Shown: positions 47,763 through 50,348 of the stretch, one piece after another
Layout of the letters: every line of letters starts with the position of its first letter
Numbering within the stretch: position 1 is the first letter of the stretch
DNA from: Hyaloraphidium curvatum SAG 235-1
Taxonomy: Eukaryota > Fungi > Monoblepharomycota
Assembly (NCBI GenBank): GCA_025558095.1
Contig: JAIVFI010000006.1
Span: 248,001 to 312,000 of the forward strand
Direction of reading: 5' to 3'
DNA: 64,000 bases
The notes under the pieces: generated by a model
The model's database searches: none
What the model was told of the DNA's origin: nothing
What the model saw: the letters and a program-made list of their open reading frames with translations, nothing else
Made by a program: the position numbers and the translations under genes

Positions 47763-48704
47763 CGTGGAGAGCGGGTTCGGGGGCTGCGGGGGTGGGATGG
47801 TCGGCGCGGATCGGCGGACGCCGTGGGCGGCCCCCGCGGGCTCGCGCAGGCAGCACTCGCGTACCAGCCCGTCAGGGCACACTGCCGGAGGTTGTGACAT
47901 GGTTCCGGAGTCGCTTGCGGGGGCAGGAAGCTCGGTCGGTGCTTCCGGATCGGGCGGCCAGATGCGAGGATCGGCGCACCACCACCCGGAGCGCGTGGAC
48001 ACAAGGTTGGTCCCTGACCAGCGACTCCATCCGTCAGCGGATCAAACCACGGAGCGCGGTGTCGGGAATCCGCATCCAAGATGAATATATTCAGTAGGTC
48101 TTGGATATCGTGCGCTGTGCGCCGCTCGTGCACGCTCCACGTAGAGCGGAGATGGAACGTCAGATAGGGCGCTGGAAGCCCCGGCAAGCGCGGAACCGAG
48201 ATCGGTCCGATCCAGGACCACGAATGAACCTCACCGGTGCATGTCCGCCTCTTCCGCGTCGCCGGCACGCCCGTGATTCGCAGAGATCGCGAAGATCGGG
48301 AGAAGGAGCGGCACCGGGGCACACGGGCACGTGCGGGGCTGGTGGGTCCGCAAACCGTCGCCGCCCTGCCCTGAAAAGTCCGCCATGGTTCTCGCGGGCA
48401 ATGGAGCATGGCAGCAGACAGTCGGGGTTCATGGCCCACAAACTGCTGGTGTGATTCTGGCGCGTCCTTTCAGGGGATTGAGGCGGCGCAAGCAGAGGGA
48501 CGGCAGACTGGCCACCAGTCGCAACAGCAACCGGAGGGGGTCCAACACAAGGTTTCGCCGAAGGTAGCAAAGACATCACATTCGAAAAGATACGATACAC
48601 GCTGCCGCACTGCTTGCAAATCGTCCAGCTCCGCCGGGTCCTCCGCCCATTGCCCAAAGTCCAGCCAGGAAACGCCTCCACGGCCGCCTCCCGGCCCTGT
48701 CCAC

Positions 48705-49648
48705 CTACAACGGCCATCCTCTTGCCCCCCCCTTCCTTCTAACCTCCCCCCCGCATCCTCCCGGTCCCTCACGCAACCGCCACGTCGAGCTCCCACCACC
48801 CCTCGTCCGCGCCGATTGGACCGTCGAGGTCCCGCGCCTCGAATCCGACCTCTTCTTCGAGAGGAGGGAAAGGGCTGCGAGGACCGAGATCCGCTCGGCG
48901 AGCACGAGGAGGGGCCGGAGCCGCTGCTGGGCATCCGCCTCCCCGCAAAGGGAGGGGGCCGGGAGCGCTGCGGGCTCACCGGGTCCGGCCTGTTCTGGCG
49001 GGAGCTGGACGAGGGCGTGCACGAGGGGGTCCGGGAGGCCGAGTTGGGAGGCCAGCTGGTTGAGGGCGAGGCGCGAGGAGAGCTCGTCGAGGCGGGCGAG
49101 GAGCATGGCGTTGGATTGCTCCAGGGCCGAGAGGCGTGCCTGCAGGAGGGAGTTTTCCTGGGTCAGCTCTGCGTTGCGGGTTTCGAGTTCGGCCATGTAG
49201 CGGCGCTTGCGGTCGCGCGAGTCCTGCGCGGCGGCGCGGTTCTTCATTATCCTGGGTAAAGAGAGAAGTCAGGATTTGCTGCGGAGAGGGCGATGGATGG
49301 TTTGACGCACCTCTCGTGCTGCTTGACGGCCTTCTGCTCTGGCGTCAGCACCTGGCGCTTGCCCTTGGGGCCCGTGCGCTTCTTGACCATGGCGGGCCGC
49401 AGCGGCACGGCGTCGGACGGGCGGGCCTCGGGCGACGGGCTCGGCGACGGCGCGAACAGCGCGGATGGGTCGATTGCCGGCGCCTCGGGCCGCGGCACGG
49501 CGAGCAGCGAGGCGAGGTCGACGCCGGCGGCGGCAAGCGCCTCGACGAGCGAGGCGCCCGGCGGCGCCCACGTGGCGTCGGACGACGACGGCGACGGCGC
49601 CTCGGCGAGCTCGAGCAGGTCGCCAACGGCGAGGTCCGCGAGCGCCAT
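48705..49648 (-). CDS. HAC1: bZIP transcription factor, HAC1/XBP1-like; spliceosomal intron 49252-49310; unspliced form ends at 48705, Ire1-spliced form at 48769
   Basis: KRQVLTPEQKAVKQHER|IMKNRAAAQDSRDRKR plus a leucine zipper; twin CNGCAGC hairpins downstream. Confidence 0.85.
48927..48970 (-). other. predicted Ire1-excised non-canonical 44-nt intron
   Basis: Hairpins GAGC-CCG/CAGC-GCTC and GCC-CAG/CAGC-GGC on the mRNA strand; 44 mod 3 = 2, as in the 26-nt XBP1 and 20-nt hacA introns. Confidence 0.8.
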
Positions 49649-50348
49649 GGTGTCCCTAACTGGTGTCCCTAGACCGTGTGCGGGCGCGCCCTACCGCGGG
49701 AGGGAGCGTCGGTTGGTGGAAGAAGTTTCGCTAAGTTGTCCTCGGCTCCCTCCCGCGTGCGTGGCAGGTTTTATGGCGGGTCAATGTTCGGCCGATTGCG
49801 ACGTGGCAGACTTTGTCGGTCCCTTGCCTTGCGCGGCCCGTGCTCAGCCCCATCGAACCGCAGAGAAAAGTCGACACAGCACCTGCGGCAGCGTAGCCAC
49901 GGCCTTCAACCGGGTCTAATGGCGATTGACAGCTCCAAGGAAAGCTTTTGGCCGGCACCGGAGCGGAACTGGCGCGGATGGGGGTCGCGGTATCCTTGTG
50001 TATTAGCAACAGAACAAGACGTTCGCCGACAAGCAGAACGGTCCAAGCCCTCGGCTCATTATTAATGACCTCAGAAAACACACCCAGGGTCAATCCTGCC
50101 CTGGATGCTTGTCCAGGAGGTGGCCCGCCTTGTCCGTTCCTCGATTGCCACCGATCGCCAGTCTCCTCCACCGCTCGCCGTCGTCCAGCTCCCTTCCGTA
50201 ACCATCCGACGACCAATAGGACCGACTCTGGCAGCTTTTATCTCGAAAGCGTTGCCGGCGATCGCTCAGGGTTCTGAGATGACTCAAATTGACATAAAGC
50301 GAGATTGAGCCGACACCTCTGTCTGTCTCCCGGCCGGAAACACGCGCC

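Follow-up and report, generated by a model that had tools for sequence, protein, structure and literature searches.

The 64-kb window analyzed here (64,000 nucleotides (nt) of contig JAIVFI010000006.1 of the fungus Hyaloraphidium curvatum SAG 235-1, positions 248,001 to 312,000; base composition ~65% GC) holds on its minus strand a bZIP gene that can end in two very different ways, depending on whether 44 nt downstream of its leucine zipper are kept or removed. The question raised by this locus is whether these 44 nt represent an intron of the type excised by the kinase-RNase Ire1 and, if so, what purpose the unspliced frame serves. A HAC1/XBP1-type switch in an early-diverging fungus had been proposed by an original prediction made from the sequence alone, and the organism fits that description, H. 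curvatum being a member of the phylum Monoblepharomycota, inside chytridiomyceta. The gene is the HAC1/XBP1 orthologue of H. curvatum, i.e., a new member, hitherto without a name, of a well-known class, and it is very probable that Ire1 excises the 44 nt from its mRNA, whereby an acidic tail replaces an apparently translated hydrophobic and basic one. All coordinates given below are those of the window, and all features of the gene are located on the minus strand.

Identity of the gene and its joined mRNA

The gene starts with an ATG at 49648-49646 and contains one 59-nt GT-AG intron (49252-49310), which lies within the bZIP basic region and is evident from both the sequence and a skip in an RNA contig. 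Exon 1 (49311-49648; 112 codons plus 2 nt) encodes in its C-terminal part the basic stretch KKRTGPKGKRQ...KQHE, and its translation is equivalent to residues 1-112 of the GenBank model DFJ74DRAFT_657578, with no mismatch. Exon 2 opens in frame with IMKNRAAAQDSRDRKRRYMAELE..., the basic region and leucine zipper occupying 49083-49250, and its translation was matched by Pfam to bZIP_2 (4.9e-11) and bZIP_1 (3e-9). The bZIP is therefore encoded upstream of the unconventional intron, as is characteristic of the HAC1/XBP1/bZIP60 class, and across this domain the protein exhibits 48% identity with the Spizellomyces ‘transcription factor HAC1’ and 44% with the XBP1 of Latimeria, which substantiates the proposed HAC1/XBP1-type assignment.

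When the exon 2 translation was used in a word-based protein search, two proteins were obtained at E ≤ 0.001, while an exhaustive representative search with DFJ74DRAFT_657578 returned 510 proteins at the same threshold. Named homologues include the ‘transcription factor HAC1’ of Spizellomyces punctatus, which is the nearest of them, and proteins of Rhizophlyctis rosea, Massospora cicadina, Calcarisporiella thermophila and Olpidium bornovanus, together with others from Gongronella, Diversispora, Dispira, Terramyces and Coemansia, and the ‘X-box-binding protein 1’ of Latimeria.

Evidence for the spliced form was obtained from a public run of 2018 (run X1), kept as contigs and of guessed RNA status, which was aligned with positions 48300-50100. 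A 380-nt contig of this run, with a depth figure of 4972, lacks both the 59-nt intron and the 44 nt. The first skip, at 49251-49309, has the ends CT..AC on the plus strand, corresponding to GT..AG on the gene strand, and the absence of this intron indicates that the contig derives from processed RNA. The second skip removes 44 nt at 48922-48965 with a positional ambiguity of 6 nt, which is due to the repeat GCAGCG, and is compatible with 48927-48970. The ends at the seven equivalent placements are GC..CA, CA..AG, AG..GC, GC..CA, CG..AG, GC..GC and CT..CG, none of which represents a GT-AG, GC-AG or AT-AC pair. An mRNA with a 44-nt deletion and without GT-AG ends, as had been anticipated, is thus present in run X1. 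Furthermore, the assembly has the gene only once, with the 44 nt included, and thus offers no retrocopy as a source of the joined form. The joined mRNA exists, and its frame changes after ...GPGEPA. A second run, a wastewater metatranscriptome (run X2), yielded a 177-nt piece of a related bZIP with six differences, which is uninformative with respect to splicing.

The expectation that standard gene callers would miss this product was wrong for this genome: DFJ74DRAFT_657578, a ‘hypothetical protein’ of 258 amino acids, corresponds exactly to exon 1, exon 2 and the tail obtained by removal of the 44 nt. As the 44 nt are absent from this deposited, transcript-based model, the gene model of the annotators already holds the spliced product; what is missing from the annotation is a gene name and the recognition of the intron as Ire1-type. 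The contigs of run X1 also reach the 3' end of the transcript, extending to ~48594 (stretch 48594-48732), beyond which depth figures fall ~1000-fold, which suggests, at the level of contigs, a 3' untranslated region of ~175 nt past the stop of the spliced frame.

Hairpins at the intron borders and their conservation

Two hairpins, 44 nt apart, begin ~90 codons after the start of exon 2, just downstream of the zipper. The 5' splice-site hairpin (48963-48977) is composed of the arms GAGC (48977-48974) and GCTC (48966-48963) around the 7-nt loop CCG/CAGC (48973-48967; the stroke marks the predicted cut, here 48971/48970), and its stem is lengthened by CCGG/CCGG at 48979-48982 and 48959-48962. The 3' splice-site hairpin (48920-48932) consists of GCC (48932-48930) and GGC (48922-48920) around the 7-nt loop CAG/CAGC (48929-48923), with a predicted cut at 48927/48926. 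Both borders, gagcCCGCAGCgctc and gccCAGCAGCggc, fit the Ire1 loop consensus CNG/CNGN, and cleavage of each loop behind its third base removes exactly 48970 to 48927, i.e., a 44-nt intron with the ends CA..AG, flanked by the 6-nt repeat GCAGCG. The hairpins and the intron are thus found at the very positions assigned to them by the original prediction.

The minimum-free-energy structure contains, in addition, a closing helix that pairs both exon flanks, its 5' arm GGCCGGA (48984-48990) and its 3' arm TCCGGCC (48913-48919) constituting an inverted repeat, and in this same structure the extended 5' hairpin and an intron-internal hairpin are also formed. The latter is a possible element at 48938-48955, with CCTCCC (48955-48950) and GGGAGG (48943-48938) separated by TTT GCG, for which a counterpart, CTCTTCTT/AAGAAGAG, occurs at the same place in the related locus L001 (z -2.56). 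Loops of the form CNGCAGN on stems of 3 bp or longer occur 21 times in the whole window when both strands are considered (128 kb), while pairs of such loops 15-500 nt apart occur only twice, the HAC1 pair being one of these. A comparison with HAC1/XBP1 models had also been suggested, and an Rfam scan of 48500-49800 (E ≤ 10) matched no HAC1/XBP1 intron family; the sole Rfam match, to mir-4874, was rejected as being at chance level (21.5 bits, the gathering score being 70).

The DNA of eight related loci, i.e., the close relatives L001, L009 and L010 and those of Massospora, Spizellomyces, Rhizophlyctis, Calcarisporiella and Olpidium, was searched for loops matching CNGNNGN or CNGCNGN and closed by three or more base pairs. 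In all eight, one hairpin pair was found downstream of the zipper. The introns so delimited measure 38 nt in L001, 26 nt in L009, 17 nt in L010, 41 nt in Massospora, 17 nt in Spizellomyces sp. (L012:1896-1912), 17 nt in Rhizophlyctis rosea (L013:1940-1956) and, as predicted Ire1-type introns, 131 nt in Calcarisporiella thermophila (L014:1824-1954) and 440 nt in Olpidium bornovanus (L015:1487-1926). With H. curvatum included, intron length is 2 mod 3 in 9/9 loci. Of note, the predicted introns of Olpidium and Calcarisporiella are bordered by strong twin hairpins with stems of 6-8 bp and would represent long introns outside Saccharomycotina.

The conservation of the hairpins in orthologues, on which the original prediction had staked its validity, extends to these eight further loci and is accompanied by covariation of the stems. 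At pair 3 of the 5' stem, five loci have GC, two AU and two CG, while pair 4 of the 3' stem, which was not imposed by the scan, is paired in 8/9 loci with five pair types. The covariation scores of the two stems, 0.31 and 0.32, were matched by none of 500 shuffles, and slid controls scored much lower. The exon flanks are likewise joined by a closing helix, of differing sequence, in eight of the nine loci (all but Spizellomyces), its pairing exceeding that of shuffles at a fraction of ≤0.013 in five loci; that of L009, GGAATCTGGA/TCCAGATTCC, has a z of -6.9.

The 44-nt length had been regarded as atypical, a view that these data do not support, as the relatives span 17-440 nt and published lengths also bracket this value. 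The metazoan XBP1 intron measures 26 nt, that of Aspergillus hacA 20 nt and that of Candida albicans 19 nt. A range of 19-29 nt has been reported in several fungi and in mammals, along with 56 nt in Cryptococcus HXL1 and 252 nt in yeast (PMC3154848), while introns of the CTG-Ser1 (Candida) clade reach ~850 nt (PMC6222058). The 44 nt therefore represent an ordinary intermediate length within the fungal range.

The two reading frames and their tails

The unspliced frame reads ...GEPAALPAPSLCGEADAQQRLRPLLVLAERISVLAALSLLSKK..., continues past the hairpins as ...GEPAALPAPSLCGEADAQQRLRPLLVLAERISVLAALSLLSKKR... and stops at TAG 48707-48705. It comprises a hydrophobic segment, LRPLLVLAERISVLAALSLL (48861-48920), which overlaps the spliced-frame codons ...APAPPRARRADLGPRSPFPP, followed by a basic remainder (SKKRSDSRRG...ARGWPL; 48705-48860). 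The spliced frame, GEPAAAPAPP...GWWELDVAVA (full reading GEPAAAPAPPRARRADLGPRSPFPPLEEEVGFEARDLDGPIGADEGWWELDVAVA), stops at TGA 48771-48769, its C-terminal tail (...PLEEEVGFEARDLDGPIGADEGWWELDVAVA; 48769-48926) being acidic and aromatic and containing an ARDLDG motif at 48820-48837. As 44 nt is 2 mod 3, removal of the intron exchanges the basic, hydrophobic tail for one of 54 residues that is acidic and aromatic; acidic and basic residues number 7 and 16 in the unspliced tail and 12 and 5 in the spliced tail. The best 15-residue Kyte-Doolittle window of the unspliced tail scores 1.85 and ends 53 residues before the stop. The deduced translation of both frames is in full agreement with the proposed switch from a hydrophobic to an acidic and aromatic tail with a stop at 48769, and at the sequence level the gene possesses all features that define the HAC1/XBP1/bZIP60 class.

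The same division of properties is observed among the relatives. Unspliced tails are basic in 9/9 loci (acidic/basic residues from 4/13 to 10/22) and spliced tails acidic in 9/9, while a hydrophobic 15-residue window with a Kyte-Doolittle value of 1.76-2.54, ending 35-89 residues before the stop, is present in eight of the nine unspliced tails, that of Olpidium, with its 440-nt intron, being without a hydrophobic segment. In L001, L009 and L010 the unspliced frame retains ...PLLLL.ERIS[VI]LAALS..., whereas the spliced frame carries the motif [AR][RQ]DLDG near its end, which is kept in four loci. Within the 30-nt block encoding ERISVLAALS, the variable columns number 2, 2 and 7 at codon positions 1, 2 and 3 of the unspliced frame, and a CTC to TTA change in this block keeps Leu in that frame while it alters two residues of the spliced frame. 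Conversely, the 18-nt ARDLDG block has 0, 1 and 4 variable columns at codon positions 1, 2 and 3 of the spliced frame.

These counts point the same way, in small numbers, namely to protein-level selection on the unspliced frame just past the intron and on the spliced frame further on. Because each frame varies mainly at its own third codon positions, both appear to be translated, a situation resembling that of XBP1u, i.e., the unspliced form of XBP1. The hydrophobic unspliced tail, which had been recognized in H. curvatum from the sequence, is conserved among relatives and appears to be under purifying selection. Furthermore, the unspliced tails of Spizellomyces and Rhizophlyctis can be aligned well (score 183), some of the aligned blocks being located past the stop of the spliced frame. 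These blocks include STQAHPLA..SMV.MI and G..PDLNGY, and the two tails also have a common C-terminus, FP[VI]LR.IW, which is a candidate arrest-like motif.

Proposed mechanism, rival explanations and known systems

Within the unfolded protein response, the gene would provide the transcription factor of the Ire1 branch. Following removal of the 59-nt GT-AG intron by the nuclear spliceosome, the cytoplasmic mRNA is expected to fold into the closing helix of the exon flanks, the two hairpins with CNG/CAGC 7-nt loops and the small intron hairpin. An Ire1-type kinase-RNase would then cut after the third base of each loop, thereby freeing 48927-48970, and the exons would be joined by an RNA ligase, either Trl1-type or RtcB, to encode an acidic tail that putatively acts as an activation domain. 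The unspliced mRNA would also be translated, the hydrophobic segment serving this form; most likely it holds the complex of mRNA, ribosome and nascent chain at the endoplasmic reticulum (ER) near Ire1, as does region HR2 of XBP1u.

Candidates for the machinery are encoded in the H. curvatum genome, which contains two loci of the Ire1 type (kinase plus KEN). That on contig 7 (~264700-268400) has a kinase and RNase after an open reading frame with a weak PQQ-like match (E 7e-4); such weak matches are common for Ire1 luminal domains, and this gene is likely to represent the membrane sensor. The locus on contig 12 (~409400-411400) is a single open reading frame of 653 amino acids with kinase and KEN and without a luminal part, possibly a soluble paralogue resembling Ire1 or RNase L. 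Two candidates for the exon-joining ligase are also encoded, i.e., RtcB (7.8e-58; contig 3, 482830-483921) and a Trl1-type CPD domain (2.6e-22; contig 23, 322186-322818).

Several points weigh against this explanation. An RNA folding check had been recommended, and the 91-nt element is not singled out by its energy, as its fold is no better than that of dinucleotide shuffles (z -0.80); the same holds for the intron (-18.8 kcal/mol; z -0.46), so that the predicted CCTCCC/GGGAGG stem is indeed present, but no more stable than shuffled sequence. Folding energy alone is uninformative in DNA as GC-rich as this, the GC content being ~67%. Part of the stem covariation is attributable to ascertainment, because the scan required the first three pairs of each hairpin, and the codon-position counts derive from four sequences and short blocks. 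The 73-residue unspliced tail, when compared by phmmer with every chain in the PDB, including the solved XBP1u, gave no match at E ≤ 10. As the RNA nature of run X1 was guessed and only contigs are kept, this run speaks to the presence of the spliced form rather than to a ratio of spliced to unspliced mRNA or to conditions, and dependence on Ire1 and induction by ER stress are presumed.

It would nevertheless be highly improbable for the 44 nt to be a normal spliceosomal intron, very short and non-canonical at its ends, with the hairpins being incidental. Such a reading could draw on the deposited gene model, which also drops the 44 nt, and on the contig, which is likewise devoid of a normal intron, yet no placement of the junction provides spliceosomal ends while the real intron nearby, of 59 nt, is GT..AG; furthermore, across nine loci both ends fall inside conserved CNG/CAGN loops with covarying stems, and these loops remain constant while the length between them varies from 17 to 440 nt. 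There is also little reason to believe that the deletion is an artefact, be it template switching during reverse transcription or assembly collapse at the GCAGCG repeats, or a DNA indel allele, even though a 6-nt direct repeat borders it, the region is GC-rich and structured, and it is seen in one run only, kept as contigs. The joined contig is a high-depth form in that run, the assembly has one copy with the 44 nt in place, the frame that results from joining gives [AR][RQ]DLDG with third-position variation in relatives with introns of 17, 26 and 38 nt, and intron length is 2 mod 3 in all nine loci, all of which argues against such an origin.

A more serious alternative, although an unlikely one, accepts Ire1 splicing as real but denies the unspliced frame a function as protein: the hydrophobic segment would arise incidentally from constraint acting on the overlapping spliced frame or on RNA structure, and translation of the unspliced mRNA would be silenced, for example by pairing of the 5' leader with the intron as in S. 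cerevisiae. Leader positions 49743-49754 and intron positions 48950-48961 are indeed 92% complementary over 12 nt, the leader also holds a perfect 13-nt inverted repeat, one arm of which shares this complementarity to the intron, and Olpidium does without a hydrophobic tail. The complementarity is, however, at chance level, with 41 inverted pairs in 1.3 kb, and leader-intron pairing was not accepted as evidence, pairs of this kind being frequent in such GC-rich DNA. Of the 11 columns that vary in the overlap block, moreover, 7 fall on third positions of the unspliced frame, the CTC to TTA change among them, and in Spizellomyces and Rhizophlyctis conservation of the unspliced frame runs past the spliced-frame stop.

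With Ire1 excision and a translated unspliced tail as the preferred explanation, the H. curvatum gene can be compared with the known switches. The human XBP1 5' loop is CCGCAGC, identical to that of H. curvatum, and the gene further resembles XBP1 in its short 2-mod-3 intron downstream of the zipper, its open unspliced frame and its acidic spliced tail, while it differs from XBP1 in that its 44-nt intron has its own hairpin and in that it belongs to a fungus, in whose genome a Trl1-type ligase domain is encoded as well. XBP1u consists of the hydrophobic HR2, ~50 residues and a terminal pause (PMC11077094), and the corresponding distance from hydrophobic segment to stop is 53 residues in H. curvatum. 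No arrest motif was recognized, and the likeness to XBP1u would be one of mechanism.

With fungal HAC1, hacA and HXL1 the gene has in common the kingdom and the twin-hairpin Ire1 sites, and its layout, in which a conventional intron lies at the bZIP and an unconventional one follows downstream, is like that of Cryptococcus HXL1 (PMC3154848). In yeast, translation of unspliced HAC1 is blocked by pairing of the 5' untranslated region with the intron, and targeting occurs via an element of the 3' untranslated region (PMC11077094), whereas the unspliced frame of H. curvatum is apparently under selection at the protein level. A Hac1 candidate of Rhizopus arrhizus (Mucorales), another early-diverging fungus, similarly has a non-canonical intron that was recognized by RNA-seq and is not annotated; Mucorales are reported to be without an RTCB homologue and to have a sealing-only Trl1 (PMC10946435), unlike Hyaloraphidium with both RtcB and a Trl1 CPD domain. 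Plant bZIP60 has a 23-nt intron, and its unspliced form, bZIP60u, has its activation domain at the N-terminus and also possesses a true transmembrane domain. As in bZIP60, the twin-hairpin frame switch of H. curvatum removes a hydrophobic C-terminal segment, but here that segment includes charged residues (E, R), and it is splicing that adds the acidic domain. In several plants, ribosomes stall ~50 residues downstream of the hydrophobic segment of bZIP60u (PMC11077094).

The gene is, to this extent, an expected member of a well-known stress switch; what may be new is the comparative sequence evidence for a translated hydrophobic unspliced tail in early-diverging fungi. A search of the literature yielded no report of an HR2-like region in the unspliced Hac1 of fungi, which is not proof of novelty. 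The analysis names the unfolded protein response's transcription factor in a deep fungal lineage, where the deposited protein is still called hypothetical, supplies exact predicted cleavage sites, and extends the Ire1 twin-hairpin switch and the 2-mod-3 rule over several early-diverging fungal phyla with introns of 17-440 nt. Its wider value lies in the dual-coding signal, which, if the hydrophobic tail of the unspliced frame is functional, would link fungi with animals and plants in the manner by which HAC1/XBP1 mRNA is delivered to Ire1. It may be suggested, tentatively and with somewhat less than even confidence, that early-diverging fungi (Monoblepharomycota, Chytridiomycota, some Zoopagomycota, Mucoromycota) translate unspliced HAC1 mRNA and that its conserved hydrophobic region, perhaps with a C-terminal pause, brings the mRNA to Ire1 as in XBP1u and bZIP60u. 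Targeting by the nascent chain would then be ancestral, and the yeast translation block and 3' untranslated region zip code a later invention of Dikarya or Saccharomycotina; a functional hydrophobic tail would date the yeast mechanism as derived.

The perfect 13-nt inverted repeat of the leader, CGCGGGAGGGAGC / GCTCCCTCCCGCG, is located at 49695-49707 and 49745-49757, its arms being 37 nt apart. It sits 47-110 nt upstream of the HAC1 ATG and could represent either a hairpin of the 5' leader or a palindromic promoter site.

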